Shown here one piece after another: positions 28,416 through 58,140 of a stretch of 64,000 nt of DNA. The notes under the pieces are model-generated. The model had not been told where the DNA came from, searched no databases, and saw nothing but the letters and a program-made list of their open reading frames with translations. The position numbers were made by a program, and so were the translations under genes. Source of the DNA: Marsupella aquatica (taxonomy: Eukaryota; Plantae; Marchantiophyta); contig OZ316899.1 in assembly GCA_973895155.1 (NCBI GenBank), positions 3,493,455 to 3,557,454 on the forward strand, read 5' to 3'. Position 1 is the first letter of the stretch, and every line of letters begins with the position of its first letter.

Positions 28416-29128
28416 GGGTATGATAGCCATGACAGAAAACAGAAAACAGAAAACCTGTTACCAGGGGTTTATTTTCTGTTAACAGGGAAATTGTACCTGT
28501 TACCAGTAAGCTTGTCCCTGTTACCAGTTTTGCCTGAACTATAACGTGCATATCCACCACTCTAAGGTGCATATCCACCACTCTAATGGCATAATTTTTG
28601 GGGGGGCAATAAAGTTTAAAACAAACAATTATTTTGTGCCATCCGATGGATGAAGTGTACTATCAATCCTCCATTGACACAACAATTTATTGTAGAAGAT
28701 AAAAAACATGGTATTAGGAGTGTGCCTAAAGAAACATTCATGCAAATCAATCTATTTTCATCGCCAAATAGTGACCCTTAGAGTGGGACCCACCATAGCA
28801 CATGTCAATCGTGGAGTCCAAATGAACCCAATCTAAAGGAGTTGATTAAATGGACCTTGTAACGTCACAAACAAATGACAAATCACATCCTCGAGGCTTT
28901 GAAGACAGTAGACAATTTAATCAACTTACACATTTTAAATAAAACAAGAGGTCATTCTTCCACAATGCACGTACATAATGAAGCAATGAATATCCGGTTT
29001 CCTAGAACCAGCGCCCGGCGCTAACCAACAAAGTCTCAATAAAACAACTAAAATATCCGTTGGAAAAAGACAAAATAGGGAATAACCGTTATATTGAACG
29101 ACGACCTATTGGGCAGTTTCGATCTCTC

Positions 29129-32100
29129 TCATAAGCCATTCAAGTTCTGCCTCTCCAGCACAAGCCTGACTTTGCCTAAAGTCAAAATAGGTTGGCTACA
29201 AAGAGTCGACTCCTCAATCTCAAGTTTGAAAACATTTATGTACACCCAGTATAGATGTTTGCAAGGCATGTACGACTTGCCACGCGAATGTCGGAGGAAG
29301 AAGTCTTCACAAGAGCAAGCGGGGAAGATACAGATTTGGACGAAGTATGTGCTTGGTGATCGATGGTTCTCATGGGTTCGAATTCGAAATTGCTTTCCAA
29401 AAGCATTTCCGGTCTGAACATTCCATTCCCCATCCAAACTCATCACTTCTTGTCGTGCAGACTCCATTCGCTTCGTGTGACCCACAGTGAGATTAGACCG
29501 AGGCCTTGAGTTCCTCCCATTCCGACTACCAAGTCGGAGATTCGGCTCCAAAAACCTTATTGTTTCTGGGAACACGTTAACATTTATCCTGAGGTCAAAA
29601 GCAGATGGCACAGATCGACTCAATCCTGTTGTTCGCGCTAAGACAAGTCCTTGCTCTTCCAGGAATGTAATTTCAGAAGGAGACAGGCTCGTACCCTTCA
29701 GAACAGGCAAAATGTCAGGAAAAGGAGGAAGCTTCTGAACACCACGACGCGGATGACTCTTGTAACACGCTTGGTTCGGGCAAAACCAAATCATTTCGGA
29801 GATGGGTTCGCCCCTGAAGAGACGATGGCCCTTCACGACAATTCCGACAACACCTTCAGACGAATGGAAGCCAACCTTCTTGATACGATTTCGACACTCA
29901 TCGCGATCCGAACTCCCATTCAGTGTACCATTGCATTGCGGACCTGCTCCATACTTCGATGTCCGTCGCAACTGCCACTGCCCCGCAGGGACATCCTTCT
30001 CTAGCACAATCGTGCGTGGAAGTTGATTCTGAAGTGCTGTTGGGGCACTGATCGGAGGTTTTGAGGATCTTGTTGTTCGGGTTGTTTGAGGAGTATAGTC
30101 CAGTGAATTAGTATCACTCTCTGATGTGACCATACCTGAGAGATTCACCGCCTTTGTGACAGGATGATCAGAACTTGAGGGAATAGAAGAAAAATCAGTT
30201 CTGTTCAGGTTCTTCCTTTTCAAACCACGAGTATTTGGTGTGGTTATTAGAACGGTGTCATGCCGATGGGAATCTTGTGGAGAGACAGTCCCAGTTGCAT
30301 GTCCCTTCCTCTTCATTGACTTCGTCATTATATCTCCATTCAGGGGAGTACTTCTTTCCAAATTGAATTCTGCTGCGTTAGATAGAAGCATATTAGTCGC
30401 TTCTTCAAACAATCTTGGTGAACCTGCTTGATCGGCGGAATGGAACGCCAATTCCCATATAGTTGGCCCCTTCCCCCGGTTCAAGCCTTTACGGTATGCA
30501 CTGTATCCGGCAACTTGAGACAGAGCACGGTTTTGGTCAACTTCGCAAGCTTCATAAAGACCGACCTTTTTCTTTGTAGCTGAGGCTTTCATGGATGCAT
30601 GCCTTGATTCTGACCCTGTACAGTTGGGGATCAAGGCACCTTCCTCAGCGCTTTTGCTCTGCCATACGAAAATGTCAACCGTAAGTAGTATTCTATTACC
30701 AGCGCCCGGCGCTGGCAACATAAATATGTAGAACAGGCCTGAAATACAATTTCAATGTTTAATACTGAATTCTAACTACATATTGGCTTCAATTTCTTGT
30801 ACTACTTGTTTTGACGTGTATGGAGAAAATAACCAGCGCCTAGCGCTAATATGAAGTTGATGAACATTATAGTCTAGATAGATGGATGCCTTACCACTCG
30901 AATAAAATTGCCCCACTGGCGCCAGCGAACAACCCACCAAGACATCCAGCTTTGCAGCATCTTCAGCTTTCCGGGGACACAGTTTCCTGATTGCCACCAC
31001 ACAACAATCTCTCGGGACACCCGGTATGCTGCCACAAATGATGGAGCATTTCTCAGTTTCTCCCAAAGTCTTCGATGCTCCGATTGACATTCTTCCAGTA
31101 CTCCTTCCTTGGAATGACGATGAAAAGATTGATAAAAGTGAAATGCATCAGAGCGCTCCCTCTCCGGGTCCGGGTGTCCACCCAAAAAAACATTTCGCAC
31201 TGCATTCCATCCAGCTTGTGCATTGTCGGCCATAAATCCTTGGATGACAACCTCCTGAAGTTCATTTTCTTTGCAAACCTCAATCATCACTCTCCATGCC
31301 TTTTCAAAAGACTCAGTGTCTTCACCTTTCAACTCGCATGTGAAAATTGTACACAATGCACGGAAATTGTGGTCGTAGACGTGTGCGCTGAAAGTAAACC
31401 AATCCGTGGTGACACGCTGCATCACATCAAAACTTACCCAGGCTCCTTCGAGTCTTCCACCCGGTTGCATCTGCCTCAAAAGATCCACACCGGAACCGTG
31501 ACCTTTCACGGTCATTTTAAAGATGTGAGGCCTATCGTTCTGACATCCCTGACCTGGAAGCAAATACCTCTGGAGAAACGACACATGAATCCTCCTCTGC
31601 ATTTGCGAGAGAAAATCTAATTCACCCGACCTTTTTGGTCTATCCTAACGCTCCGACAAAGAGATGCAAACTTCTGCGGAGTGGAAAGGACCATCAAAGA
31701 CTTCCATATTTCAGTTTCTTCGATATCGACCATGTCGTCAACATGTTCGCAGAGAGATTTCACTAAGGACCCTGTAGCAGAATTCAAGATCCCTGCCGGT
31801 TTTGACAGAGGATTGGCTTCATGTTTTTTTTAATTAGATCCTCAGCTATCTTCTCCGCACTCCTACAAAAGGTTTTTCTACCTGGATGGTTGTGCTCACC
31901 TATATGAATTGCCAGGCGGGACATATGACTACATGTTTCCGCATCAAGTAATACTTGGGGGTACATGTAAAACAAACGGGCAGGGCAGTACTTCACACAA
32001 AAAGGAATCTGTTCGCAGTAATGACAAACAACACCTCCCTCTTCGATGAAAGATCCCACAGCATACTGACCACTGAGCTTTGGAGTACCCTGCCATGCCT

Positions 32101-32931
32101 TAGCATTTGCCTTCTTCTTCCTTTGGAAATAGTCGTAGGACTTGTTCCTGCATTCAATGAATCCCGTACAGGTAACCTTCCCAAACTGCCAAAGGTTTTT
32201 AGGATGAACAGTTGCAGTTGTTGGAAATATGCGTGTCCAAATGTAACAATCTTTGGCACGATCCATGTCCATAAGCCTAGAGCCTTTAGAGAGCATCTTA
32301 TCAATGGGCGGCAACTCAAACACGACGTTACCATTGTACTTAGTTGGCAGACAGGACACTTGTTCATGCCTGAAATCACCCGCTGATATGAACCGTGACA
32401 ACTCACTATGACCAGTTGATTTGAGTAACGTATCCATCGCACTGTGCCGGTACACGACCTCCAACTGCTTAGAGCTTCCCGGAGTCTCAACTTTCACGAT
32501 AGCAGGGAGCGGGCTTTTCTTCTTCGACGGTGGACTTAGAGTACAATCTCCATCCTCACTTGAAGAAATCTCAACCACATCACATGGAACCGGCGGGAAA
32601 CTGGACAGTCCTGCATGCTGTCTTAAATGAACCGAGTACGAGATCCCTGCGTAGAGATGCCAAAACCGTTACCGTCATCGACATTGAACGTTGCAGCATC
32701 CTCGATATCATCAATGGATTCGAGCTCTCGAACAATGGCCTCAATGTCATTCACCTTCAAATCAAATCTCCCGCAGAGATACCTCTCCCGGACCTGCTTG
32801 TACGTATCTTCCATGGGGACGGGGATAGTCACAATATCTTCAGAACCAAATCGAGAAAGAACGATAGACCGAGACATGGTGAACAAAAACAAAAACCGAG
32901 GGCTATAGCGTTTGAAAGAAGAAAAGTTCAT
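29129..32931 (-). CDS. MULE transposase (GCM/WRKY-like Zn domain, DDE core, SWIM finger), multi-exon, two apparent frameshifts
   Basis: CTGFIEC..C..C..C.ARL..RLAIHIGEHNHP; FDVMQR, FMADNA..NAVR.VF, FHFYQS, SESRHASMK (candidate D-D-E); CSCEDF..PCKHLYWV. The 5' start is uncertain. Confidence 0.8.
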
Positions 32932-33807
32932 GGTATTGTTCAGCTTATATCTGTCGAACCTGGGAATTTGACGTTAACCGATCCGTTTGTATACGACATA
33001 AAACATTGACGATGGAGGATCCGTTGGCACCATAAATGATTTTTGTCATTTTTTCCCCGAGAAGTCCGGATGTCAGACACGAACATATTGCTAAAAAGAT
33101 CACCAACCTTACTTAAACAGACCATAAGATATGACAAGGTATTGTCAAATTTTAGTAGCGCCTGGCGCTAACTAAAATACGCCACTAAAAATGTGTCTGA
33201 AATCTCGACATTCCAAACTAGCGCCCGGCGCTAGTATAGAATAAATTCCCTGAAAATGAACATTATGACCACATACCAGGTGGTAATTGGGAATAAATGG
33301 TGCCTTCAAAGGATGGTTTTGATGGATTATGGATGATAAATGAACATTTATACTAGCGTCGGGCGCTAGTATTACATTTGAGAAATATTTCTCCGTAAGC
33401 GATGTATTGAAGGATACTTTAATAAAATATGGGGGTGGAAAGGCCGAAATTTATGTCATAGCTCCTTCAAAAAAGACCTCTAAATTTCTTCTAGTTTATA
33501 CTAGCGTCGGGCGCTATTATAAGCATACCCTCTAAATTGTTCACCTTGATGGTCATCATTAATGCTAGCGCCCGGCGCTAGTATTGATATGATGTTAGGA
33601 AATGTCTTTAACGGTAACATTCAACGGTAACTTATGACTTCCGTGTGTGTTACGCATCTTCTACCGTTTGATTTTGGTAATTAAACCTTCCGTATATAGA
33701 CGTTGGAAACCGCCAAACATCAGAGCTAATGGCTTTCCTCTAGGTTATGTCATCCTCCCGCTAGAATATATTACACGTTCAGAGATGATTATAGTTCCAT
33801 AATTTCA

Positions 33808-36800
33808 TTGTACGATAGTTCGTACGCTTCTAGAAGGAAGACGATGGAGGTATTCCCCTCTTCTTCCAGAGGGTATAGTGCGGTTCCTGACCAGGAGCGA
33901 GCTTATTCTGAATCTTCGCAGTCTTCATTTACTGGTTCAGTCTATACACGTCGTGTAACTCGTTCCTCAAAGTTGTTGCCGCTCACTTCTGTCAGCGGTG
34001 TTTTGGGTCCAAATCCTTTGCGAAGAAAGATGGACAACATAGACACAATTGCGATCCAGGATGTTGCGGATTGCGCGCTTGCTGAGACTGATCTCATTTC
34101 GAAACATGTCATGTCTTTTGGAAAGGATTCTCGTGGATTTGACAAGGAGCCGCCTCGAATCCCTCTGTGTCGATTGGTTCACATGGAGGTGGTTTGTACT
34201 CTGTAGAAAGACAGCTCTTCCATCGAGAAGCTGAAAGACTCTTTTCGTAGTATGGGTTACAACTCTTCGATAGGGATGCGTTTCTATGTGCAGCCAACGG
34301 ATGAGAATGGAATTGTTCTGACCTGTACCCAGGACATTCGTGATTCATGGGATCCAATATGGCAATTGGAGAACGAGAAGTTTGAGGCTGAATGCGAGGC
34401 TGACCCGGATTTTCTCGTCTTGAAGGATAAGATGTTCTCTGTATTCGATGGAAATCACAGGCTGTACTCCTGGACGCTTGTAACAGAGGAGAACCCGGAC
34501 AATCCAAAATATCATCCTTGTGTGCTCTGTACAATATTTAAAGGAGACAAGGGATCTCTCATTGAAATTGAGGCAGCTATGCACACCGTGAATCAGTAAG
34601 TTCTCATGATTTCCAGTTCTTTCGTTAAATCTTGTGAGTGCTGTATTTACTAGCGCTCGGCGCTGCTTATACATGAATTGTTTTTCATTGACTCTTACTC
34701 TCAACGTTTGTTCGTGTAGGCTTGGCCAAGCAGTTGTAGAGCCTTCCTGGATCCTGGATGCGGACATAATCAAACGAATTCTGGCGCATGACCTTGAGTA
34801 TTACAGTAAACTGATTGACCCGAGTAATTTCAAGAAGTTTGAAAGCATTCGGCTGAAAACTCGGAAGGGGTCATGGTATACGAAGAAGATGCCACAAGAA
34901 GCACTTGTTTACATTCTTTGTGAGAATAAGATAAAGTCGTACTCGCATCAATTCAAACTCGACATGGAGGCAGCGGAGGCTCAAGGGAGTCCATGGTCGG
35001 CGGACGAGATTTCAAAGCGGCATGCGGCCATGATGAAAGACGCAACCAAAGATTGGGCAGTGAAGTCTTCAAAAATTACGCCCTTATTAAGTCCTGAATT
35101 TGAAGATTTCCTCAGTACATGTGCAGAAATGTATGCTGTCACAGAGAGAAACAAGAGAGAGAAGAAGCCTGACACCGTTGTATGTACGATGGACCGCGCA
35201 CGATTGTTCACCGCTGTTTCTGCTATAGACCCAAAGTTACGAAGCACTTTACTTGTGGCACATTGCAATCCTGAGCTGCGGAGACAGTTTTTTCACCCAG
35301 CAAGTGTTAACGATGATCCAGTCAAATAGTGGTGCCACACTTGGATCACTTGGAATAGTGTGGAGGGAATTGCTGCTGGCATGTTACATTCATGTCTACG
35401 TGAAGTTGAGCAAACCATGCCCGCGAATAGATTGGAAGAGTGGAATTGTAGTTCGTTTGATGATCTAGTTCAGTTTGTTACAAATGAATTCAAGAGATTT
35501 GGTGATTCCGTGAAGAATAAGTTCTTTCACACTATGTGGCCTTCAAAGTACCCTGACAAAGAAGATTACACCCAGAGAAACCAGAAGCGAGCGAAGAGGT
35601 TTGTGTATAGGTTCTACATGCACATGGAGGTAACCAAACCTGATTACTTCTGGGCATATCCTGCAGCTTTTATGAAGTGGATTTCAATAAGTGAAGATGA
35701 TGCCTTGGCTGATTTGTACTCTATGTACTCCACGGAGGGCATATTTCCTCCGAGACCAATGACAGAATGGGAGAGAACTCACTGCCCCTAGTATCTAGAT
35801 ACAGATAGATGGGATTCTCCTTTTGATCAAAGGGAAAAAGATGCCTTCCATAAGCTTTCAAAGTCTCAGATGCCAGCAAAACTTGTGTCCGACATGAAGC
35901 AGGGTCTACTTGACGATGTAGACAAGTCTGCCACAAACTTGCAAACTATCTGTGAAACAACTGTTGTGCATATGGACCGAAGTCGCAAACCTCGCGCGAA
36001 AGCCAAAGCGGAGCTAGCAGCACCGAGCGAGTCTACTAAATCTGGAAAGAAGAGTAAGTATTGCTATCCATGATTTTGGCGTTGGCAAAAAATATTCTGT
36101 TGAGGGTATTCTCTTTCTTGGTTATTAGGCTTCGGTTGCGACTTAAGTGAATTGCATTTGGTTAGCGCCAGGCGCTAGCTTCTTTCAATACTTTAAAAGT
36201 ACTTATTCTAACTACGACCTGGTTATATTTTAGGAGGGAGGAAGTCTAATACGGTGGGAACGGGAGATACGAAAAAGGATGCTACACCTGAAGTTTCTGA
36301 GGCAAACACGGGAGCTCGATCGGACCCCATTACTCCAGTCGACAAAGGGAAGGTTATAGTTCCTATCGACGCCACGAGTACCAGGAAGAAACGAAAGAGA
36401 GCTGTCGAAGGTGGACAATCTTTAAGGGAGAGTGTTATAGCTTCTGGTTTCCAACGTGAAGTTGGAAACTTCAAAACAACTGTGTCTCGCCATTGCATGG
36501 TTGAGACAAGCCTTTCTGAATTTTTTGACTCGACGTTCAACAAGGAGGAGAAGCCCGAGTGGGTTAGTGATGTGGAGAAATGGGGAAAAGACCTCGTTAA
36601 GTTGGGATTTAAAGAGAAGGGAGTTGTTCGGTGGGGAAAAGTAAGACCGTTTGGAGTGGATGCCGGCTTCATTTACCTACCGACCGGGTTCAAACCATCT
36701 ATCATTGATAAGAAGGTTCCTAAATGGAACATTCCAGATCACTCAATGGCTAGATCTTTTTTCAAATCCATGGATCCATTTTTATCAGATGATGGGTTCC

Positions 36801-37510
36801 TTGTAATTCTACACAATGGGGAGTACGATCCCATGTCGCAAGTCATTGCTGCCTGTCAGGAGTCAAGGAAATTTCAGTGTATATGCTCGCATAATGTTGT
36901 GATGTCTGACCCGATGTATGCGGCAAAGACAGACCAAGAGATGTTTACCCTCAGGCTCAACATATTTGGCCGAATTAATGGGAAATGTAAAATTCCCAAA
37001 GACCCCAAATTTCGGCCGCTGTCCATCAGTGAGGACCCTTCGGTTACCAATTTGATCGGACTCTCTTTGCTCAAATCAGATCCATTCCCGCAAATGGAGT
37101 TTGTTGGAAATGCTCGTCTGTCTGTGGGTTTTATGCAATCTGTTATAGAGCTTGTCACACGGCCTCGTGATATTTTTATGGATTGGACTGCTGGGGCTGG
37201 AAGCTCTTACATTGCTAGCGACTTCTCTGGACGATTTGTACTCGAGATAGAACACCGGAAAGAATTTATTGAAACCGCTTCAAAGGTTTTCATGGATTTG
37301 TTGTCTCCCAAAGAGATTGCAGTGTTACCTCCACTTGTTCCTACTGCCGACAGAAAAAAGAGAGATAAGCTTCGGTCGGTTCTCAATTTTGATTCTGATG
37401 ATGAATCGAGTGAAGGTGGAGAGGAACAAGGTACAAGAAACTCCGAGGAGGAAAAGGGAGAGCGTCGTGCAGCTGCAGATGAAACCGATAGTGATGACTC
37501 TTCCGAGTAA
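33808..37510 (+). pseudogene. Multi-exon MULE cargo gene: ParB/Srx-like domain, unknown helical region, N4/N6-DNA-MTase-like domain
   Basis: IPLCRL..VV(C)TL..IEKLKDSFRSMGY...FSVFDGNHRLYSW. GT-AG introns at ~34597-34718 and ~36055-36231. C-terminal FMQSVIELVTRPRDIFMDWTAGAGSSYIAS..SGRFVLEIE. A few in-frame stops. That all exons form one gene is inferred. Confidence 0.65.
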
Positions 37511-37573
37511 TGTTCATAAACTCGTAAGCTTCTTTCTCCATTCCCGTCAATTCATAACATTTCTTTTGTTGTT

Positions 37574-37924
37574 TTGGGGAAAGGCGCCTTACAAAATGGA
37601 CTTTGTTATATCAGGTCAGAGTGGAATGCAAGGAGACGATTCAAACTACGAAGGAAGATCGCGAGACACAACGTAGAAACACCGGAAAAACCGTTTGTTC
37701 TTCCCTCCTATGCAAAGAAAGCCGCAAGGAAAGCAGAAAGTGCAAGGACACTTTGTTGGGAAAACAAAGGTCTTCGGTTACGAAGGGGTGTTGACCGAAA
37801 GTTCATTAAACATCCTTATGTTGATGACTTCTCCCGCAGCCAGTACGTAGATGATGAGGCTGTGTCCACGGACAGATCCCAGAGTACAGATTCTGGTTCC
37901 GACTCAGAATCTCCGGAACCGTGA
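37574..37924 (+). CDS. Hypothetical MULE ORF or exon (basic then acidic)
   Basis: 116-aa ORF on the same strand as the cargo gene; no recognised motif. Confidence 0.3.
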   Translation: MGKGALQNGLCYIRSEWNARRRFKLRRKIARHNVETPEKPFVLPSYAKKAARKAESARTLCWENKGLRLRRGVDRKFIKHPYVDDFSRSQYVDDEAVSTDRSQSTDSGSDSESPEP

Positions 37925-38194
37925 GAAGTAGTGGGTAGTTGAGGCTAAATCTTTTAGCAGCGCCCGGTGCTTGTAACATCTGTATTATTTCCCTCTGCTG
38001 AGGGTCCTTTTAAATTGTTGATTTCTCTCTACTTGTTGATTACTTTTGACTTCTGTTCTTTACAAGCGCCTGACGCTCGCCAAATGGAATCTCTAAATGG
38101 CCGTTTAGTCTTTGTCATTTCCTGTCAACGATCATCGTCATTGGATACCAACTGCCATTTGGATTGTGTTCTTTAGTCAGTCGTCAGAAAGCCG

Positions 38195-38590
38195 TTGGGG
38201 ACCATAGTTTCGGGATGATGATTCCATAGTTTAGGGACCGGGCGGAAGGGACGACTATAGTTTCAGTTTAGGTTTGTTCGGGACGACGAGAGTTGGGGAC
38301 GTCGATAGTTGAGGACGACGATAGTTTTGGGAGGACGATAGAACGGGACGATAGAACGGGACGATAGAACGGGATGATAGAACGGGAGGGGAGACTTTGT
38401 TTCGGGAGGATGATAGAACGTGACGATAGAACGGGATGATAGTTCGTTTGGGAAGACTTTGTTTCGGGAAGATGATAGAACGGGACGTTAGAGCAGGGCG
38501 ATAGAACGGGACCATACCTGTTACCAAGGCGAAGATAGTTTCGGGAGGCAATAGAACGAGACGATGATAGTTTGATGGTCGTTTCGGAAC
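38195..38590. repeat. Minisatellite of GATAGAACGGGAC (13 bp) and GATAGTTTCGGGA variants
   Basis: Direct tandem and interspersed copies are clearly visible. Confidence 0.85.
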
Positions 38591-38722
38591 GGTAGTGTAC
38601 GCGGACCTTTATCTGGCGTCTTAGTCTTTGCGGACCTTTCTTTGACCTTTGTCGGCTATAGCACTCGCGGACGACGTTCTTACGGGAGGAGAGGTTACAT
38701 ATTAGATCGGGATCTTTGAAAC

Positions 38723-39184
38723 ATGGCGAGTCAGTATGAGCCAATGGATTGGGAGGCAGCTTTTTGTCCTTCTCGTGTGCGTCCGGAAGAGAGCCATTTC
38801 AGCTCTTTTGAATCGCGGATGGAAACTGAAGAAACTGAAACTTCCACTTTTTGCAACCGTCATGCTCTACCGTATGATGAGGCTATTAGTCCTGGAGAGA
38901 AGAACATCCCTTGGATTGTCGATTCCCCTGCGCCTCCGTTCTCTAGTCGGTTTTCGTCTCACCCGGGAGTTCTTGTTGATGGGGTACTCCCAATCGATCG
39001 AAGAGTACAAGAAATGTTTGGGCGAGTTGATTTTAAGGACAGTAATATTCCTAATGAACATTTTACGAGGGCTGTTCGTCGAGGACCTTCAGAGGGATAT
39101 GTTCGTTTGCGTGGTCTCGGCTTCAAGAAAGATCGGCGGAGAGAAGCAGCAGGAGTGGATGATGATTGCAACTCGGAAAGCTAG
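38723..39184 (+). CDS. Hypothetical 153-aa MULE ORF
   Basis: ATG-initiated, natural-looking composition, no recognised domain. Confidence 0.4.
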   Translation: MASQYEPMDWEAAFCPSRVRPEESHFSSFESRMETEETETSTFCNRHALPYDEAISPGEKNIPWIVDSPAPPFSSRFSSHPGVLVDGVLPIDRRVQEMFGRVDFKDSNIPNEHFTRAVRRGPSEGYVRLRGLGFKKDRRREAAGVDDDCNSES

Positions 39185-39893
39185 ATGGAAATTTCGTTTT
39201 GCTGATCGCTTTAAGCTAGCGTCAGGCGCTGCTAAAGTTTTCCGGATTTTGTGGCATTGAAGTCGACCTCAGCTCTGGCGTTAGAGTTTTCCCGGTTGTC
39301 TACTATTTAGGTTTTGGCTAGCGCCGGGCGCTATTGAAACGACAACGGATTTTGTGGGAGGGAATGGATCTTGACTATGTTGTCTGGGTTTGGACGCATC
39401 TTGTCTCCAAGAAACGACTAGTTTTCTAGTTAGTTTTTGGCTAGCGCCGAGCGCTGTTCATGTATTAGTCGAAAACCTCCGACGGTGTCGACCATGACTT
39501 CATGGATGGGATTTTTAGGCCAGATTGTTGATGTTGATAACTGCATTTTGTATCACTTAAGCCGAGCGCATTTTCTATTTTGCGATAATATATGCGAATG
39601 TTTTTCCCGGCCTTTCTTTTCTACTTGTATTTGTCTTGGATTTTGTGTATCTCAATTGGCAGCCGTCTTTTATGTTTCAAAAAATTGTTTCCTTGTTGTT
39701 CTTTTATTTATCACGAGGGTTTGGTGGTTTTGTTTTCTATTCTTGTACTTTCAAATGGAGATTTTGAGACCTTTTTTTAAGATAACTGTTCACGACCATC
39801 CAAACACTGTTCACTGGTAACAGCTCCTTTTAACTGGTACCAGAATCTGTTTCCTGTTACTGTTATCTGTTTGCTGTCATTTGTAAATTCCCC

Positions 39894-48359: not shown

Positions 48360-50689
48360 CGGAGGGTTAGGCTTAGAATAGACTTAGGAGTAGCTAAAAC
48401 AGGCTGGTAGGACAAGTGCCGGCCAGAAGATAGCGGCGCTGACACATTAGCCAGCCTGTGTAGAATAGGTTAGACTAATAGGACAAGCAAGCACCAACTT
48501 AGCAAGGATATAAGTTAGCATAGATTTGGGCACAAGGCCAGGCCGGTACTCAACCCTTAGTATTTAGCGGCCCCCCAGTAGAGGTTAGAGAGGGGGATTT
48601 TAGACTCAGAAGTTGGCCATTCGCAGTACGTACGGGGAGTCCTGAACTCGGTGAAGTACCGGAGTACCAAGGGGAGGGTATACGACTAAGCTCGTTGGGC
48701 GAGTGCGGAGCCGGGCTCCGTTGTAGTGTATACTCCTCGGCCTTGGGCCCGGTCGTTCACGAGGTGTCAGGTCAACCAATTGTAAAGTGTATGATCATAA
48801 ATGAATGAAATCCTTTCTCCTTAATTCCTTTGTGTAAATTGAGATTTCTGTTATGTATGTATGCATGTATGAGTCTCGTGTGCAAGTATCAATGTCGGGC
48901 CAAACATGTTATGCCAACCGTGCACGGGGTGCAGGATACGGGTACGGGGTTGCGAGCCCGGGTTGAGCTCTTGTACTAACGGATCCGGATCGAAGGCGGT
49001 AACACAAAGGCTTAGAAGTCCGTGAGCCGGGGTCGACCCCGTGTCGACTAAGGTACGTTCCGGCGGCATAACAGTACATAACAATAAGCGCACTTAGCGC
49101 TAGTTTACATGAATTAGGAGCATTCCGTGCGTCCCTCCCTGCCCAACCCTCATATTCACAAAGGATGTGCCTGTCTAAGCCAAAGCCCGGGTTAAGGCCT
49201 AGGCTGACGACGTGACAATATACTATTTGGGAATTTTGGCACCTAGGTTTCCACATCAATGGGTTTCAAAGGCGACCAGTACATTAAGTTTTTGAGTCAC
49301 TGGTTATTGTAAATGGTAATACATACTTGTGACAAGTATTTGTGTCATCAAAAAAGCATTTGGCCCCAAACTTCCTCCATCTTCTAAAATTGATTGGCGA
49401 GGGGATAATAATGTTAGAGAGGTATTATGGAACCTGGAGATTGACTCCATTACTACCCTCAACATCCCAGTAAAATTCCCGTTGTTGTCCCAAAGCCTTA
49501 TTTGCCGACCATGTGTCATCATGTCATGCCCGGGCCCTATCTTCCTTGGATCCCACAAAACAATGCCTGGCCACATTGGATCCCATTTTCCCATAAGAAA
49601 TTCAGACCTGGGTTTAGGGTCGCCCGTTCAGTCACACCGGTCACACAAGTCACAAGTTCACGTTGGGAGTTAAGGTACTCTCGTGAAGTTGAGCAGCGAG
49701 TGCAGGTGCGAGGTCACTACTGCAAGTTTGAGGTGCAAGGTCGCTGCTACAAGATCGGGGCTGGGCGGTGAGTTGAAGTGCGAGCTTGGTGCTGAGCAGT
49801 GAGTTGAGGTGCAAGGGCACTACTGTGAGGTCGCTGTGAGGTTGTTGATGTGAGGTTGCTGCTGTGAGGTTGCTACTGTATCAACCTATTCATTAAAAGA
49901 GTGGTTTTTTTTGTTCACAAATGAGTCTTGAAATGTACACTTTCATGGCCCCAAATGTACACTTTTGTGTCTCTAAATAATGTACACTTTATAGGCCAAA
50001 TCACATTAGTATTATATTATTAAACAATACATATTATATTATTTAATAATTCACAGAGAGTGGAGGATAGGAACTTATAAAAATATTTCATCCCCATTTA
50101 AGGACCATTGATACTGTGTGAACAAAATAACATCATTCCAAATAGATTATAAAATATTTTTATACAATTATCTGCAAATTTACAATGAGTACGAACACAT
50201 TTCTAGTACTATCCAAGGGGCTTAACATGAGTCAATGAAATATCTAAACCAAGTGCTCCGTACAATGTGTATTTGAGCATGTGCCCCTGTCTCCTTTCCT
50301 ATCTACCCTATTGTCACGGTTGCAACGCCCTTTATTTTCAGGGAGTTGAAATTTGGTGGTGTTGTTCCTAATGGCTATAATCTCCTGCAAAAAGTGTCTG
50401 GGATTTTCTCTATATGGACCTGAATAGTCCTTTCCTAAAAATGATTTAGCAAGTGAGTTGACAAGTGCATTGTCAAGTTCCTCCTCAGGACGTAAACTAC
50501 ATATATGGTGCTTTACATTCCAAGGGATCTCATTGTTGTTGAGGTCCAACACACTATGCGTAAAGTGTGACTTCCAAATTTTTGCTGCAAATTTCTTGCT
50601 AAGTTGATCATAAGTAATCTCATTTTTTGCCTTGTCTCTCTTCATGTGCAAAAGAGACCACTTTGGAGAGTTCAGAAGAAGATAACATC

Positions 50690-51260
50690 AAATGTCACTT
50701 GCATGTGAAAGTTTCTCAAGACATGGCCAAAGAATTGCTAGAAGAAAATTATCTCCACGATTGGCATGCGTGTAGGGCACTGGAAATAATCCGGTCATGT
50801 CTGGGTTGGCAAAGGCCTTAAGGGGGGAGTCATCCACAAGGAGGGTGTTGGTTTCATCATATAGATTTCCAAATGCATTCCATACCATCCAAAAATCCTT
50901 CAATAGCACATTTGCCTTTCCGTTTGTAATGTCACGCCTTTGAATGCTTGTGTCAAAAGCTTCCACCTGTGTGAATACAAACTGGAGTTTTGACCTCTCC
51001 TCATCAATGAACATCATGTTCAACATTTTCATTGTTCGCAGTATCCCAACACATGTCCAAATTGCAACGTCAAATTTGTCAAAACTTAAGAAACTCATGG
51101 ACCCCTGGTCATTTTGTATACATGCGACTAATACCATTTTTTTCTATCCCAATGCACTCCACTTGAGGTGACAATATTCCTGGATGTGCCCTTGCTTTGG
51201 AATTCAACAGAATCCCATAGTATTTTATTAAGGTCCAAAATCAGCAACTTCCGCTTGACG
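50690..51260 (-). other. FCP1/NIF-like phosphatase domain
   Basis: RKLLILDLNKIL (~51218-51255), (R)PGVHEFL, DVAIWT, LLKDFWMVW..Y..TNTLLVDDSPLKAFANP..GLFPVPY. Confidence 0.8.
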
Positions 51261-51977
51261 GGACAGGTCTCAATTCTGCAAGTGCACCAAACACCATTCT
51301 CAGAGAAAAGACCAAAAGTGAACTTTGGATTAGGATTGTCTCAGTCCAAAAATACAAGACAATGGCTGACAAAAAAGAAAATTAACCTACATACCGTTTT
51401 TAGAAGCCTCACAATGTGTAGACGGATATGGAGACTTTAATTGGTGAGCGCATTCTGTGAGACCGAGAAGTATTTTAGATTGGTATGAATAAATAGAAAG
51501 TCAAAAGCTGAATTTCATTTCAAAATAAGAGATCCATATTCATCAATAATCATGTCAACACCAAGCTCTTGTTGGATTTCAAAATTGACATCTGAAGTAC
51601 TTTGTTCTACCCAATAAGGTGAAGTCCAAACAGGAGTTAACAACCCCAATTCTGCCCTCTTATACTCCTTATTGAGAATTGAAGGAGCAGCATCCAATGA
51701 TATTTCTTGGCCTTCTACCCCATTACTTGCTTTTTCAGACTTCTCATTTCCTTCTACCCCAGCTCCATCGGGAAGTTTCCCATCCAACCACAACTGGCAT
51801 ACCAAACTCCATAAATCAAAAAGAGCATTGTCCGCAAACAGTAACCAGTAAACATTTTGACAATCTTTCCTTCCCATGGTCATTCTTGCAAGAGCCAACC
51901 AATCCTACAATTGCAAAGGAAAGTCTTTTAGTTCTCCATAACTCAATTGTTTGAAAGCACTCAGGTGCAGACTGAGA

Positions 51978-52312
51978 TCATCCCAGTCCAACACAGAACT
52001 AGACAATATCAGTGGAAATATTTTATTGAATGTGCATGATTTAGTTTGGACTGGGACCATCCTAGTCCAAAACAAAACTAGACGGTATCAGTGGAAAAAT
52101 ATTCTATTGAATGTGCATGAATCCATTTGGACTGGGACCATCCCAGTCCAACACAAAACTAGACGATATCAGTGGAAATAGTCTATTGAATGTGCATGAT
52201 TCCATTTGGACTCGGACCATCCTAGTCCAACACAAAACTAGACAATATCAGTGGAAATATTCTACTGAATGTGCATGTATCCATTTGGACGTGGACCATC
52301 TCAATCCAAACC
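51978..52312. repeat. Four ~79-bp tandem units, each with a hairpin TTGGACTGGGA-CCA-TCCCAGTCCAA
   Basis: Units are visible directly; 11-bp stem and 3-nt loop at the unit junctions. Confidence 0.9.
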
Positions 52313-52399
52313 AAACTTGAAGCTTTGTGGTCAAAGACTACCATCTCAATTGTAACCACATATGGAGAGTCTGCGGTATTGTACCCATCAAGCAGTAAC

Positions 52400-52990
52400 A
52401 CTTCGTACCTGAAATTTTTGATTGTCTTGAGCGTTTGTTTTGTTGTCCTCATGTTTTGGCCGGCTAGGTCTTCCACATTCCACAAATTGTCGCCTAGCAT
52501 GAACAACTGTATCTTTGAAGCAGGACTGAAACACCATCGTGCTATTGATAGCATTAGATCGCATTGAATGCTCAACTAATATTGACGATGCTGTTCGATG
52601 AGATAATATTCTTGACTTTCAAAATTCCAGCTTTTTTGCCAATGTTGTTAGCTTGGCATCCTTGTTTGCCCATTCTTGAATCCATCTGGTTGCTCTGGCC
52701 GAATGTTGACCGCTAATGGCAAGGAATTGAACCTCACCCTTTTTCACGGCTGCTACAAAGTCCCTCCTATCTGATTCCGTGTTGTCATACTGCATTAGGT
52801 TTCTATGTTTTACAGTGTAAGGAATCAAGTTTGCTATGTGTGGTTCATGCCCCCGATTTCTTATCATGGAATTGGCCACCTCCTTTACATGGTCTGCATT
52901 CAACATTCTGTAACAGAGTCTTGCCGACGCAGGGAAAATACTCTTTACGGGAATAGAAAATATCAAATTGATCCCAAACATATAATATTG
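52400..52990 (-). other. ParB/Srx-like domain of element D
   Basis: FSIPVKSI..CYRMLNADHVKEVANSM...VQFLAISGQHSARA resembles ParB R...l.eLa.S and the G.HR/HS box. Confidence 0.6.
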
Positions 52991-54187
52991 CTCCATTTGT
53001 TGTAGTACCTCATTACCTTCTAAGACCTTCTTCTCCTCAGGAGCGTCCAACTGCTCGTCCACATCTTGTGAATGCACTGTCAGGTTTTTTGTAGTGTCAT
53101 CCATGATGGCACTGTCAATTTTCTGTTTCTTCTTCTGTCTTGGCCTCTTTTCACTTGCACTCGGCTTCGCAACCGGACGTTAATTTCTTCTCAATTGGCT
53201 TCTCAACTCGACTTCTCATGCTTGGGTTCTCAAATGGCTTCTCAACTGGAAGTTTCTTCTCAACCGGAGGTTTCCTTTGGCTTTGTTTTCATTTTCCCAC
53301 TGCTCTTTGAGAGGTTGCTGCTGTAGTTCCTGCGGTCTCTGTTGTAGGTTTTGGAGCTTTCTCTGGCGCTTGCTCGGGCACAGGGTTTGTATTCACCGCT
53401 GGAAGCTTTCTCGCCTTGGACAAAGATTCTATCCACTGCTTTGCTTTGACTAAATCAAACTTGGGAGCAAATGCAACATCTTTATCAATTAAAACCAGGC
53501 TCCTCTGACTCCAACGATAACAATCCAGCTTTCTCAAGTAAATTGCTTAACGTCTAGGTAGTTGGAAAAGAGAAATTGCCTTGGTGCTTCATCATGTTGA
53601 GTTTCAAATATTGAAACCCATACATAATGTCAACTGGAAGCATACCAGTTACCCCGTCGACCAAATTCTTTGTGTCATAGGTCTTTGGAAAAAATCCCAT
53701 TGACAAAACACTCAATTCCCCACTTGAGTGCCATTTGACATTGAATTTAGAGGAGTATGCCTTTGACAGAAGGTTAACTTTAACCCAACGAGACTTATCG
53801 TGCATCTCCAGAATGACCAAATTCATCCCTCTCCCCCCAATGCCAACAGAGACCACAGGTTCACAAACAAAAGTCAGGCTATCATTTGCCTAGAACTTTA
53901 AGGTCAAAACAGGTTCATTCGTGCTTGATGGCACTTCATTATTAAGCGGGGTTCTTGAGAACTCAAGCCCCCATCGGAAGCCTGGGGATCTCTCATCTAG
54001 TAAGAATCCGTCCAGGCAGTCGGTCGATGCAATCGTGGGTTTGAAACCAACAAGATCGTTCCCTGCATCATAAACGCCATCCATGTTAGACTTAAAACCT
54101 TTAAAACATTCGAATAACTCTTGTTGGATTAGGATGGTCCTAGTCCAACTTGAGATGGTTTTAGACTTGCTCCTACAATCGGGATTC

Positions 54188-54355
54188 AATCTCCTGGGTG
54201 GATTAGGATCATCCGAGTCCAACTTTGGATTGGGATCATCCGAGTCCAACTTTGGATTGGGATCATCCGAGTCCATCTTTGGATTGGGATCATCCGAGTC
54301 CATCTTTGGATTGGGATGGTCCCAGTCCAACTTTGGATTTGGATGGTCCCAGTCC
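54188..54355. repeat. 27-bp palindromic minisatellite (in frame as DPNPKLDSD repeats on the minus strand)
   Basis: GGATTGGGATCATCCGAGTCCAACTTT repeated ~6 times. Confidence 0.9.
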
Positions 54356-55614
54356 TCTTAGACTTAGGGAGGATAGGTGATGGATACTTACAAGGGATTC
54401 ATGATTGAAATTGTCTGCCAGAGTCTTCAAGTGCCAGTTCTACAGAGTTGCTTATAGAGGAGAGGTCAAACTCCTCCGTTGCTTCCACAGTGGACAGCAC
54501 AGGGATGCAATTTGCTTCCATCTTGCTGACAAGTGGCATCGTGACACGTGGTGTCTTAGCAGGCGTCTGATCTAGGGCAATGAAAAAGAATGGAGGTGGA
54601 GGCGGAAGGCAGAGGCAAGCGGAGACAGGGAGCGAACGGAGAGCGAAGAGTGGAGAGCGAGAGCAAGAGAGCAGAGAGCGAGAGAGCGGACGGCGAGAGG
54701 AGAGTGAGGAGCAGAGCAAGAGGAGGAGGAGAGCGAGAGTGAGGAGCGGAAAGTAAGAGAATGAGAATGAGGTCCTGGCTGGACCTCTTCGTCCCTTTAC
54801 CCCCTCCTGCCTCACCCCGGCCTGCGTACGGCCGGTTGCCTCTGTATGGCCTTCCTGCGTACGGCCTGCTCCTGCGCACAACTTTCTGGCCTTCCTGCGT
54901 GCGGCCTGCTCCTGCGTATGGCCCGTTGCCCTCACCCTGAATACGAGCCTCCTTCCTTGATGTCCTGCCCAACAACCTTGGATGGTAGTCCACGCGCAAT
55001 TAGGCTCGTGAAGATAAGGTGTGTCCGCAAGCTAAGGTGAAGGGGTACTCGACCCTTATCTTCATGCAATTTCCGGTTGAGCCAACTTGAGCGAAGGGTA
55101 TAATTTGGGAGACGCCCACTTCGGAGCTCATTCTTGTTCTAGTTTCCCAAATCTAAGCTCCATGTAATCCGGAGTTTCTCTTAAAGTTTTATGTATTGAG
55201 CCACTTACCTTCAATGGGTCAGCTTATGTAGCTTCTTGACTTTTGGAGTCCTCTCAATTTTTTTACAGGCATGTGTGGTTTAGGGTTCAGTAGGTTTTTC
55301 GCTCCCAAGATTTAGTGGCATATAGCTTGTATTTCAAGATTCTGGGAAAGTTTTTACCCATCTACAAACAACAATGTGTACCCCTTGGATGTGATATTCA
55401 TCTTCTACTAGATCTTAATACTAAGGTGAGTATAAGGTTAATGCATTCAAATATAAGGTTCCATTATTTCATGAGACTGTATGTAGACATTAGGGTCTGC
55501 CTTAAGACCATGCAAACTTTAGGCTACACCATATAGGGAGATCCATAAAATACGGAGTCTTCCTAAATTTGGATTTGTCTTAGCTTAAGATGTTTGAAGT
55601 TTATCTCCCATTAC

Positions 55615-56520
55615 ATGGGTTGGTCTAGGATGGTCCTAGTCCAAGTTTGGATTTGGATGGTCCTAGTCCAAGTTTGGCTTAGGATCATCCGAGTCCAACT
55701 TTGCATTGGGATCATCCGAGTCCAATTTTGGATTGGGATGGTCCGAGTCCAACTTTCCATTAGGATGGTCCGAGTCCAAGTTTGGACTTGGATGGTCCGA
55801 GTCCTAGTTTGGACTTGGATGCTCCGAGTCCAACTTTGGATTAGGATGGTCCGAGTCCAACTTTGGATTAGGATGGTCTGAGTCCAACTTTGGACTTCGA
55901 TGGTCCAAGTCCTAGGTTGGATTGGGATGGTCTGAGTCCTAGTTTGGATTGGGATGGTCCGAGTCCTAGTTTGGATTGGGTTGGCCCGAGTCCTAGTTTG
56001 GATTGGGATGGTCCGAGTCCTAGTTTGGATTGGGTTGGCCCAAGTCCTAGTTTGGACTTGGATGGTGCAATTCCAAGTTTGGATTGGGATGGTCCTAGTC
56101 CAACTTTGGACTGGGATGGTCCCAGTCCAAATCCGGACTTAGATGGTCCCAATCCAAATCCAGAATTGGAGGACCTTAGTCCAAATCCAGACTCGAAGGA
56201 TTGCAGTCCAAATCCAAACTTGGATGGTCCCGGTCCAAATCTGGACTCGGATGGTCCTAGTCCAAATCCAGAATTGGAGGATCGTAGTCCAAATCCAGAC
56301 TCGGAGGATTGCAGTCCAAATCCGGACTTGGATGGTCCTGGTCCAAATCCGGACTCGGATGGTCCCAGTCCAAATCCAGAATTGGAGGATCGTAGTCCAA
56401 ATCTAGACTTGGATGGTCCCGGTCCAAATCCGAACTCAGATGGTCCCAGTCCAAATCCAGAATCGGAGGATTGTAGTCCAAATCCAGACTTGGATGGTAC
56501 CGGTCCAAATCCAAACTTGG
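55615..56520. repeat. Large 27-bp (and 33-bp) palindromic minisatellite array
   Basis: TTGGA(T/C)TGGGATGGTCC(C/G)AGTCCAA units over ~900 bp; produces repetitive LDWDGPSPS ORFs. Confidence 0.92.
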
Positions 56521-56959
56521 TTGGTCTAATTAAAATTTTAGATTCAACATTTGGTCTGAATCAAAATTTGCATGACTTTGGTTTTAATCCATTTTTTTCA
56601 GTGTGTAGGATAATAGGAAAAGGATGTCTCAAAGGTTTTCTAGGGGCGATGATGTGACCTTGACAATGGATGGTTACAACATTGGAAACGGGACAATTCA
56701 AAAGACAGATCCGCGAGAGAGTGTTCAAAATATTGTGTTGGGAGAGAATTGAATTGGGGTTCTCATTGAGAAGGCCTTTGGTGAGACCAGGAAGCTCCCT
56801 TTTCCAATACCTAGGGTGGAAAATATTCATGATGCCATTGACTCATGTGTCATTTGGGATATGTCATGTGCATATCGATCTGCGGATAAGATTACTCAAA
56901 ATGCATCAGTATTGGTATTTGTTCAACTCGAAAAGATAACAACATCCATAATTTTGCAA

Positions 56960-58140
56960 ATGTAGAGGAGGATGCTTCGACCACCCTAAGGCCAGGCAAT
57001 GGGGTTGAAATGTTTATCTCTGGCCATTGTGTGGCCTTTGGAGTTGTTTTCAAGACCGATCCAATGGAGAGATGTCATAACATATTACTCGGTGAGTCTC
57101 GGGTTAGTGTAAAAATCACAGATGTGATTCATGGTAGTAAGACTTTACCTTATGCACATGGTGGAGCTGCAACAATTGAAGAGGCAAAGGGCTCTTGGGT
57201 TCTATGGGATGTGGCTGACATCCACAATAAAGTATGGGATGTTGATATCGATGGGAGCAACAAATCTTCCTCTAAGAAGCAAAAGGACAAGGCGGATTTT
57301 GTTTCACAGTCTTGTTTGGCGAACACCATAGACACTAAGCGTGACTATTTTCATCGGGAAAACTGGATGTCATAGTTGGTTGAACTCTACACTAGTTTGC
57401 ATCAAACCAAAATGGTTGCCACTAGAACGATCATTGTCCTTCAAGTGACGGAGGCAGTTGATGATGAAATTCTTGGTGATGACCATGTTGGGATTGTTGT
57501 GAAAGATGTCGTGGCAGCACAATACTTTCCCAACATCCACAAGGGAGTAGTGAGTTTGATTCGATGGCGGATTGATTCAACAAAACTAGTGGCAAATGGA
57601 AAAATTTTGTCAGACATTTTGGTGGAAGGTTCTGAGAGGATGGACTCAATGGATAGGGATGAACTCAATGCAGATGTAAGTGACAGAGGAGTACCGCGTT
57701 CAAGGCCTTACAATTTTAACAAGAGGAATCAAGTAGATCCAAATGAAAAGAAGAGGAGGTTGTTGGAAACCAAGGCAATTTCAAAAACAACAGAGGCGTC
57801 AATTGATGACGTGAAAAGAGAAAATTGTTGCAAGCAAAAATGTTGTCTCATTATGCCAAGGGAAAACATCAAAGATATTAGGATGGAATTTCATGGGATG
57901 TCAAGCTAGTCAAAAACATCACACATTTTCAACCTCTTTCACTATAGAGAGGATGATGTTCATGATAAGGGACATCATGTTCTTAAGGGTATGGTCGTAT
58001 GCAGACATGCATTTGCAATGATCCACGGTTTTAGTCACACCAAATATTATGATTACAAAAGGAGATATGTGGAGGGTTGCAAAATTGGGTTCCATGGCAA
58101 TACGGGCTTGATGAAAACAAGGGCAAATACCTTGCATGCA
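56960..58140 (+). pseudogene. Transposase-like gene N-terminus (two Tnp1/EnSpm-like beta domains plus Cys/His-rich region), truncated by LTR A3
   Basis: One frame with two stops: VAFGVV..D..CHNILLGESRVSVKI..LPY..TIEEAKGSWVLW; second copy VAT..I..ILGDDHVGIVV; CCKQKCC..R..F..VVCRHAFAMIHG..YY.YK..HGNTG. Confidence 0.5.

Follow-up and report, generated by a model that had tools for sequence, protein, structure and literature searches.

The VANDAL VANC system of Arabidopsis is, to our knowledge, the only transposon anti-silencing system that is understood mechanistically. In 2025, a second system, recurrently acquired and based on a ParB-like DNA-binding fold, was suggested by the architecture alone of elements in red and brown algae. 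Here we describe a 64,000-nucleotide stretch of the genome of the liverwort Marsupella aquatica (assembly GCA_973895155.1, contig OZ316899.1, positions 3,493,455 to 3,557,454; below called the window and numbered from its first nucleotide). The window consists of transposable elements nested in one another, among them two unrelated DNA transposons: a Mutator-like element (MULE) and a CACTA element that is split by insertions of long terminal repeat (LTR) retrotransposons and of which an internal unit, D, is considered in most detail. The reading that we favour, and to which we give about an even chance, is that each transposon carries an accessory gene for a protein with a ParB/sulfiredoxin (Srx)-type and a PF01555-like part, and that the palindromes scattered over each element are the family-specific sites of this protein. 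New are the land-plant examples, in MULE and CACTA elements, and the comparative evidence: the palindromes are fixed in place and stay palindromic while their sequence shifts, as expected of a co-evolving dimeric binder.

The closest described cases are algal. Plavaka (EnSpm) elements of red algae carry the accessory genes PAG2, encoding a PF01555 methylase and a SET domain, and PAG3, encoding a ParB-like N-terminus (HHpred 7BNR_B, E=0.29) and a 2-oxoglutarate (2OG) oxygenase; tandem inverted-repeat arrays adjoin PAG3, homologs occur in Chondrus Mutator elements, and self-binding or self-modification was proposed together with a comparison to VANC (Petroll et al. 2025, bioRxiv 10.1101/2025.02.11.637652; Curr Biol). 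In Ectocarpus the transposon Sola1-1_Ec32 has, opposite to the transposase strand, a gene for a ParB-like protein with an N4C/N6A methylase; such proteins were regarded as a possible new class of accessory proteins, which would bind and modify their own transposon (Dinatale et al. 2025, PMC12477816). An earlier note on the present DNA knew of no description of such a combination, and in this it has been overtaken, since the concept, including the VANDAL VANC comparison, was published in 2025 for Plavaka PAG3 and the Ectocarpus Sola1 ParB-methylase. Fusions of ParB, helix-turn-helix (HTH) and methylase were found in chlorophytes and chytrids (Iyer et al.), VirB is an anti-silencer of the ParB family (PMC10164555), and the Marchantia host beta-class N4-cytosine methylases MpDN4MT1a/b (TSPPY) place N4-methylcytosine on sperm CG sites (bioRxiv 10.1101/2021.02.12.428880). 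Host enzymes of this kind might be related by descent to the PF01555-like domains that liverwort transposons carry. A literature search, which was not exhaustive, found no bryophyte reports of such systems.

The liverwort genes have the architecture of the published class, with a gene in a transposon beside or opposite the transposase, an enzyme-like domain and inverted-repeat arrays; the ParB evidence is weak. They resemble the Ectocarpus Sola1 gene (protein of ~1100 aa) in that an accessory gene opposite the transposase of a large DNA transposon encodes a ParB-like N-terminus and a PF01555-type C-terminus. They differ from it in host (liverwort versus brown alga), in transposon type (MULE and CACTA versus Sola1), in the non-canonical motif IV and in that Pfam does not detect ParB. 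With Plavaka PAG2/PAG3 they share the EnSpm/CACTA type of element, a weak ParB-like N-terminus, inverted-repeat arrays and a SET-like exon in the window CACTA element. In Plavaka the ParB-like PAG3 has a 2OG oxygenase as its effector and PAG2 provides the methylase, whereas here the ParB-like and methylase-like parts are in one protein and a NIF/FCP1-like gene is extra. Kinship to PAG3 and the Ectocarpus protein was judged by published architecture.

Two better-known systems offer further comparisons. VANC is likewise a MULE accessory protein, proposed or shown to bind short motifs that are enriched in the non-coding DNA of its own element and diverge between families, and which affects non-autonomous copies in trans, a function that for the liverwort proteins we infer. 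Unlike the motifs described here those of VANC are non-palindromic, and an enzyme-like domain is missing from VANC. The bacterial ParB family (ParB/Spo0J, Noc, KorB, VirB) provides the best fold matches of the D-type protein and acts as dimers on palindromes scattered over a replicon; the sites of KorB are 13-bp palindromes of 6-1-6 layout, like AGCGCC-N-GGCGCT of the MULE. Unlike the bacterial proteins, those of the liverwort elements lack profile similarity to ParB, have the GERR/cytidine triphosphate (CTP) motif replaced, have no HTH shown and are encoded by eukaryotic nuclear genes with introns.

The palindromes themselves are the firmest part of the evidence. AGCGCC-N-GGCGCT has eight exact copies in the window, against none expected from shuffles; seven of these lie in 28416-39893, which is the MULE, and one at 15559. 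With at most one mismatch, 15 copies were found in the MULE and two in a short derivative of it that resembles a miniature inverted-repeat transposable element (MITE), and the sole other match in the 64 kb, at 62923, has two mismatches. The DNA beside each MULE palindrome is unrelated and AT-rich, so that the conserved unit is the palindrome itself, approximately (C)TAGCGCC-N-GGCGCTA(G), and no longer repeat. The D unit has a palindrome of its own, GGACTGGGA-N3-TCCCAGTCC, with 18 matches at two or fewer mismatches and 31 at three or fewer, where 0-0.04 were expected; all of them are in 51327-56452. The element-specific palindromes that the earlier note had described for both units are present as it stated, far above chance. 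Across lineages the palindromes measure 12-21 bp, contain CpG and lie in divergent promoter regions, introns and 3' or subterminal DNA. We regard it as highly probable that they are element-specific and under selection.

Relatives of the MULE were found in Calypogeia fissa, where two loci (L005 and L006) have a transposase with a divergent accessory gene (DGNHR, middle and methylase-like regions) collinear with the window at 30-58% amino acid identity. Neither locus contains AGCGCC-N-GGCGCT; they carry AGCGAGCTCGCT instead, a motif absent from the window, with 20 and 17 copies where 0.02-0.03 would be expected. The palindrome positions in the window MULE are syntenic with those in both loci, and five site classes are common to the two species: 3' of the transposase, the transposase intron, the divergent intergenic region, the accessory-gene introns and the DNA 3' of that gene. 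The window palindrome is kept, in three copies, by a metagenome relative with 64% identity (L002), and a third MULE-type lineage (L001, L007, L008) has CCAGCG-N3-CGCTGG. All three MULE-type palindromes have AGCG..CGCT half-sites in common.

The D-type palindromes changed in a similar manner. The window has GGACTyGGA-N3-TCCrAGTCC, the D-type locus L004 of Calypogeia fissa, which was reached via the spliced protein P0029, has GCCTCGAGA-N3-TCTCGAGGC (14 matches against 0 expected), and the Riccia sorocarpa locus L009 has GGGACGCGTCCC in arrays with a period of 27/28 bp. In all D-type lineages one array occupies the same intron of the ParB-like gene, and more arrays lie upstream or downstream of the gene; their periods (27-28, 35, 48 or 79 bp) vary between lineages. 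The earlier note had suggested examining whether gene and palindrome co-occur, and in Calypogeia fissa, Riccia sorocarpa and metagenome contigs both are indeed kept at the same places with the palindrome sequence altered. Since the palindromes hold syntenic sites, change their letters and stay palindromic, selection appears to act on the sites of a co-evolving dimeric binder encoded by the element. This co-variation argues for such a binder and does not by itself say which protein it would be.

For the identity of the binder the transposition machinery is the main competitor. CACTA elements of the En/Spm type encode TNPA, which binds repeated subterminal motifs and reactivates methylated elements. 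The palindromes could likewise be sites for the MULE transposase and, in the CACTA element, for the TNPA-like gene X, serving transposition or autoregulation while the ParB-like protein does another job. We consider this explanation possible but rather less than likely. Inverted copies stand near both MULE ends and are kept in the MITE-like derivative, gene X has a weak TNP1 match and lies directly beside the arrays both in the window and in Riccia, and the lineage co-variation would suit any element-encoded binder. TNPA is moreover a CACTA-encoded DNA binder with repeated sites in its own regulatory DNA; its sites are 12-bp subterminal motifs, whereas those of the D type are palindromes of 9-3-9 layout that lie within introns and between genes inside the element, and TNPA is not ParB-like. 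Against this explanation, most palindromes lie away from the termini, in promoter and introns; a different motif (CTGTTACCAG) is repeated nearest to the MULE ends; and the red-algal Plavaka arrays stand specifically beside the ParB-like PAG3. Two unrelated transposase superfamilies are also alike in this respect, and, so far as we can tell, the MULE and CACTA units share only the accessory gene and the internal palindromes. The ParB-like protein is proposed as the binder on indirect grounds, because it is the common component of two unrelated superfamilies and because the terminal-most MULE repeats are of the other motif; we see the balance on this point as roughly level.

The fold of the accessory proteins was approached through their homologs. 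The D-type open reading frame (ORF) 52622-53104 (-) has 65 homologs in a library of 1.84 billion proteins, with the motif ISGQHS (ISGQHSA) nearly invariant, and all named ones are 'hypothetical proteins' of the liverworts Riccia sorocarpa and Calypogeia fissa. An AlphaFold model from a 46-sequence alignment reached a predicted local distance difference test score (pLDDT) of 95.4 and a predicted template modeling score (pTM) of 0.84. With this model the top Foldseek matches in the PDB were Noc, sulfiredoxin, SbnI and ParB, and those in BFVD were phage proteins named 'ParB/Sulfiredoxin' and 'ParB/RepB/Spo0J'. Match probabilities were at most 0.77 and TM scores 0.33-0.49 overall, or ~0.45-0.49 against Srx. 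The model makes a ParB/Srx-like fold likely for the D-type domain.

For the MULE type the hints are at the level of motifs. Three relatives of the DGNHR region are 59-73% identical to it, and the conserved motif FDGNHRL stands in place of GERR. The sole profile hint of a ParB/Srx-like region came from the relative P0003, which matched DGQHR TIGR03187 at E=0.06. A non-significant hhalign alignment of the two families is collinear and places DGNHR over SGQHS. We consider a ParB/Srx-like fold of the MULE-type domain slightly favoured. The ParB/Srx-like domain that the earlier note assigned to both units is thus suggested for D by predicted fold, with non-significant matches, and for the MULE only by motif, and it receives no ParB profile match in either.

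Several results weigh against the proposed role of the accessory proteins. No match to Pfam ParBc at E<=10 was obtained with the MULE accessory ORF or the D-type window ORF, and none with the 46 D-type homologs; nor did Pfam, NCBIfam or PDB sequences yield a ParB match when the two ParB-like regions were used as queries, in single-sequence and in profile searches. All fold matches of the D-type model have E>0.09 (0.09-3). AlphaFold was unusable for the MULE-type domain (4-sequence alignment, pLDDT 41), and hhalign of the MULE-type against the D-type family gave a non-significant probability of 0.2%. GERR, the CTP-binding arginine motif of clamp-forming ParB proteins, is absent from both families, which have DGNHR or SGQHS instead, and no HTH or other DNA-binding module has been demonstrated in the accessory proteins. 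The methylase-like part deviates as well: motif IV, (D/N/S)PP(Y/F/W), was by eye not at its expected place, which reads VDAGFIYLPTG in the window and VDAGFVYLPTG in P0001, and the Calypogeia MULE-type proteins have CLPNG and CLPTG at the DPPY place and no canonical motif IV. Every copy inspected in the window and in Calypogeia is degenerate. Finally, the transposase or gene X/TNPA as palindrome binder fits the co-variation equally well. Some further comparisons were also negative: neither ParB-like region found a tblastn match among phage genomes, and BLASTP detected no similarity between the two ParB-like regions or between the two methylase-like regions.

These results bear on a further explanation, in which the palindromes are cis-regulatory or structural DNA (host transcription factor sites, sources of hairpins or small RNAs, or satellite-like sequence) and the accessory protein is a sequence-nonspecific enzyme of the ParB/Srx/DndB type, such as an NTPase, nuclease or modification factor. 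Many ParB/Srx-fold proteins bind no parS, and sulfiredoxin, SbnI and DndB are among the matches or hints obtained here; the accessory proteins come without a demonstrated DNA-binding domain, and the D palindromes lie mostly in tandem arrays that are able to expand neutrally. This explanation seems unlikely to us, because the MULE palindromes are lone 13-17-bp islands in unrelated flanks and because syntenic sites that change yet remain palindromic suggest a dimeric binder evolving along with them more than they suggest a conserved host factor.

Both families appear to have methylase-like domains of one kind at their C-terminal ends. The MULE C-terminal ORF matched PF01555 below threshold (E=0.007) in the motif-I segment and NF010253 at E=0.012, and in tblastn searches of phage genomes 11 of the 12 best matches of this end lay under DNA methyltransferase genes, every match being non-significant. 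An S-adenosylmethionine motif I of the FxGxG type is present near the MULE-type C-terminus (DWTAGAGSS, DWSVGEGSS or DWTAGEGSS). In the D-type locus L004 of Calypogeia, the motif I of the methylase-like exon is PF01555-like ('ILDFFSGE', E=0.0016); the D-type relatives have DFFSGG or DFFSGE. Altogether, four independent proteins of both families matched PF01555 in the same motif-I segment (profile positions ~138-220, E=0.0016-0.023), with scores of 15.1-18.9 bits that do not reach the gathering cut-off of 26.7. Since DPPY is replaced by YLPTG, CLPTG or CLPNG, the methylase-like domain of the MULE type may be non-catalytic.

The window copies of both accessory genes are dead, with stops in both and with the methylase-like exons missing from the CACTA copy. 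In-frame stops in the MULE gene at 34204-34206, 35327-35329 and, in greater number, between 35789 and 36250 mark it as a pseudogene; relatives have Gln in place of the TAG stop at 34204-34206. In the D-type gene the stop at 52619-52621 is Arg in relatives. That the stops at 34204, 35327 and 52619 lie in introns was ruled out, as in relatives the reading frame continues across these positions. In the spliced relative P0029 '..SKFQ' is followed directly by 'DWQVLAKITM..', which places the end of the window exon at '..KFQ' and the array in the following intron. ORF 52222-52575 was rejected as a coding exon because relatives conserve the other frame.

The earlier note had taken the C-terminal domain for a swappable effector, a methylase in the MULE and an FCP1-like phosphatase in D. 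The FCP1-like domain is real, with PF03031 matches above the cut-off of 21.8 bits in the window (E=3.9e-6, 27.1 bits) and a similar match in Calypogeia L004 (E=8.8e-7, 29.2 bits), while the methylase of the MULE depends on the sub-threshold PF01555 match given above. The domain is most likely not part of the ParB-like gene, however. The order in Calypogeia L004 is ParB-like exons, the methylase-like exon with a stop, palindrome arrays and then a NIF-like ORF that starts with Met at 14021. The annotated Riccia protein P0069 (820 aa) contains both a ParB-like and a methylase-like part, and its end precedes the NIF-like ORFs; in L009 (CM100796.1) these ORFs lie directly downstream of the KAL3695087.1 gene, which encodes both parts. 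The window D-type gene has no methylase-like exons, and the 3.2 kb of L004 that contain this exon and the arrays correspond to only ~0.5 kb in the window, ~2.7 kb fewer. NIF was found in 0 of 46 D-type homologs. With a separate NIF ORF after a stop and arrays in L004, and with the Riccia protein ending before NIF, the apparent ParB-FCP1 gene of the window is best accounted for by a deletion through which two genes of a dead copy came to adjoin, and the NIF-like gene is very probably separate from the ParB-like one. In relatives the D-type ParB-like protein appears fused to a PF01555-like domain as in the MULE, and an exchange of effectors between the two elements is not supported. The catalytic motif DxDx(T/V) is altered in the NIF-like proteins, to DLNKI in the window and in Calypogeia and to DVEGL in Riccia; that DLNKI is an artefact of decay was ruled out by its identity in Calypogeia.

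The same evidence decides largely against the mechanism that the earlier note had in mind, in which a ParB-like protein would load at the palindromes as a CTP clamp, spread from there and carry one of two interchangeable effectors, the methylase of the MULE or the FCP1 phosphatase of D. It would be consistent with the predicted ParB/Srx-like fold for D, with the window ParB-like and NIF exons being ~0.5 kb apart on the same strand, and with the published fusion of another effector, the 2OG oxygenase, to a ParB-like domain. The NIF-like ORFs of Calypogeia and Riccia are, in contrast, beyond the stop of the ParB-like/methylase-like gene and an intergenic array, the window lacks the ~2.7 kb of L004, and NIF is missing from the homologs. 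With GERR absent from both families, replaced by DGNHR or SGQHS, and with no CTPase signature shown, the load-and-spread idea is unsupported, and we judge the mechanism as a whole improbable.

In the reading that we favour, the accessory protein would dimerize on the palindromes of its own family and would thereby carry its methylase-like module, which may be non-catalytic, to every family copy, including non-autonomous ones. The outcome could be a marking of the DNA or an interference with host silencing, comparable to VANDAL VANC or the bacterial ParB-family anti-silencers, and the NIF/FCP1-like protein would be encoded by another accessory gene of the CACTA lineage, distinct from the first. 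The anti-silencing function is a tentative suggestion. Equally speculative is the wider picture, in which liverwort transposons of two superfamilies would use a ParB/Srx fold and a degenerate beta-class methylase for self-recognition or anti-silencing, the CpG palindromes would co-evolve with the protein as parS does with ParB, and the pseudo-FCP1 could engage the C-terminal domain of RNA polymerase II. The system would then be a land-plant counterpart of VANC derived from a prokaryotic partition or anti-silencer fold. That the methylase and phosphatase modules are without canonical catalytic motifs calls for caution in assuming that the elements modify their own DNA. Binding can be tested with the available cognate and non-cognate sets (AGCGCC-N-GGCGCT, AGCGAGCTCGCT and CCAGCG-N3-CGCTGG; three 9-3-9 or 6-0-6 CACTA variants), and Marchantia is a transformable model of the group.

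Table 1. Features of the window and of related loci. Positions refer to the window unless a locus is named.
Feature	Position	Strand	Remarks
MULE-like DNA transposon	28416-39893		11.5 kb; inserted in gypsy reverse transcriptase gene; target site duplication and terminal inverted repeats
Putative MULE transposase	29129-32578	-	several exons/frames; C-terminal SWIM-type CxCx16CxH
MULE accessory gene	33808-37510	+	divergent from transposase; DGNHR region, intron, middle region, PF01555-like region
DGNHR region, possibly ParB/Srx-like	34093-34595	+	
Accessory-gene intron	34596-34719	+	canonical GTAAGT..TAG; one palindrome copy inside
PF01555-like methylase motif-I region	~37115-37282	+	
MULE palindrome (T)AGCGCC-N-GGCGCT(A)	29010		3' of transposase
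MULE palindrome	30701, 30835		gap between transposase ORFs
MULE palindrome	33157, 33220, 33355, 33503, 33567		divergent intergenic region
MULE palindrome	34652		accessory-gene intron
MULE palindrome	36164		non-coding DNA ahead of methylase-like exon
MULE palindrome	37959, 38065, 39218, 39320, 39443		3' of accessory gene
MITE-like non-autonomous MULE derivative	15329-16025		697 bp; same termini, 8-bp target site duplication GTACGCCC, CTGTTACCAG subterminal repeats, palindromes at 15515 and 15559
CACTA/EnSpm TNP2-type transposase gene	~700-5600	+	PF02992 E=6.9e-34; DUF4218 (PF13960) E=2e-23
SET-like exon	1192-1482	+	PF00856 E=2e-4, 22.1 bits vs cut-off 22.4; in 5' part of TNP2 gene region
NIF/FCP1-like gene	50247-51340	-	at least 2 frames/exons; active-site motif D-L-N-K-I
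D-type accessory gene, 5' part	52391-53889	-	N-terminal region, K/P-rich linker, ISGQHS domain, then to '..QKFQ' near 52410
Conserved N-terminal region, D-type accessory gene	53889-53292	-	
ISGQHS domain	53032-52622	-	predicted ParB/Srx-like fold
D-type intron	51905-52409	-	79-bp-period array; four palindrome copies at 51969-52228
Next D-type exon	51904-51731	-	begins 'DWLALARMTM..'
D array, 79-bp period	51970-52317		D-type accessory intron region
D arrays, 27-bp period	54126-54355 and 55622-56452 (palindrome units); 54199-54355 and 55620-56510 (tandem repeats)		between D-type accessory gene (-) and gene X (+); unit TTGGACTyGGA-N3-TCCrAGTCCAA
Gene X	57010-58140	+	Cys-rich; truncated at 58140 by LTR insertion; 'transposase-like' gene of the earlier note
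Riccia gene X counterpart	L009 4358-3180	-	beside ParB-like gene
Riccia GGGACGCGTCCC arrays	L009 (CM100796.1) 2876-7614 and 10977-11174		upstream of and in intron of KAL3695087.1 gene
Calypogeia array	L004 10499-10624		same ParB-like-gene intron
Solo LTR	18231-49217	+	~4 kb, TG..CA ends, 5-bp target site duplication ATATA; split by inserted LTR retrotransposon
LTR retrotransposon	19761-46800		LTRs 4.76 kb, 97.6% identical; sits within solo LTR, encloses MULE

The MULE is a true insertion with exact boundaries, as had been noted before. It is flanked by the 8-bp target site duplication (TSD) GCAGTATT at 28408-28415 and 39894-39901, and it interrupts the gypsy reverse transcriptase frame, which reads '..FIDDFAV' before the element and 'FAKASKH..' on its other side. 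The terminal inverted repeats (TIRs) are imperfect and start with GGGTAT/GGGGAA (GGGTATGATAGCCATGACAG and GGGGAATTTACAAATGACAG); next after them, CTGTTACCAG subterminal repeats occur at both ends. TIRs together with a TSD of 8-11 bp are characteristic of Mutator elements, and an 8-bp TSD was found both for the 11.5-kb copy and for the MITE-like derivative. The derivative lies within one LTR copy, and the paralogous LTR copy near 47236 is without it. The transposase ORFs matched no Pfam family even at E<=10, PF10551 included; a SWIM-type CxCx16CxH motif and a DDE-like pattern are visible, and among the 19 homologs are two Calypogeia fissa proteins with 61% and 53% identity. The right subterminal part of the MULE (38276-38511) contains repeats of 13, 16 and 62 bp (GGACGATAGAACG).

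The D unit most likely represents part of the interior of a CACTA element, which nested retrotransposons have broken up. Window 726-2467 is collinear with Calypogeia L004 17859-15730, where the TNP2 transposase is convergent to and adjoins the NIF-like gene; with the same transposase at ~700-5600 of the window, the TNP2 gene and the D cassette probably belong to one element, parted by nested LTR retrotransposons. The CACTA termini probably lie outside the window, and the link of the transposase to D depends on the adjacency in L004. The SET-like exon is kept in Calypogeia (L004 17199-17013, -) and recalls the SET domain of red-algal PAG2. The ORFs at 57010-58140, which had been proposed as the transposase of D, constitute gene X; the clear transposase is the CACTA TNP2 gene. 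Gene X matched no Pfam family and gave only a weak TNP1/En-Spm match (PF03017, E=0.015). It has 34% identity over 148 aa with Riccia L009 4208-3765, and in both the window and Riccia it is divergent from the ParB-like gene with palindrome arrays between the two. Gene X could encode a TNPA-like protein or a second transposase. Its product contains the motifs CCx3CC and HGNxG, in Riccia also '..IIHDKMDQVKTNIP', and its ORF 57991-58236 (+) runs into LTR sequence.

The earlier note had placed the termini of D at 49218 and 58140. The region 49218-58140 is bounded exactly by inverted arms of 2.4-4 kb that are LTRs, and since both positions coincide with LTR edges, of the solo LTR and of the 3' LTR of a gypsy element, they are insertion edges and not transposon ends. 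The gypsy element is on the minus strand, with RNaseH and integrase at 63934-62123, then a polypurine tract and the 3' LTR, which ends at 58141. The possibility that the arms are giant TIRs was ruled out, as they are TG..CA LTRs, one of them located after an integrase and the other having a 5-bp TSD. The 4.76-kb LTRs of the element at 19761-46800 are unusually long and contain ORFs of 560 aa and 440 aa.

The ratio of observed to expected CpG was 0.86 for the MULE, 0.46 for D and 0.40 for the CACTA transposase, and many of the mismatches in the D palindromes are CpG-to-TpG/CpA changes. These ratios and mismatches suggest that the CACTA copy is old and was formerly CG-methylated and that the MULE is of more recent origin or less methylated. 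A tandem repeat with a period of ~410 bp at 16610-17973, which has an LTR fragment on one side and the solo LTR on the other, may be CACTA-internal DNA.

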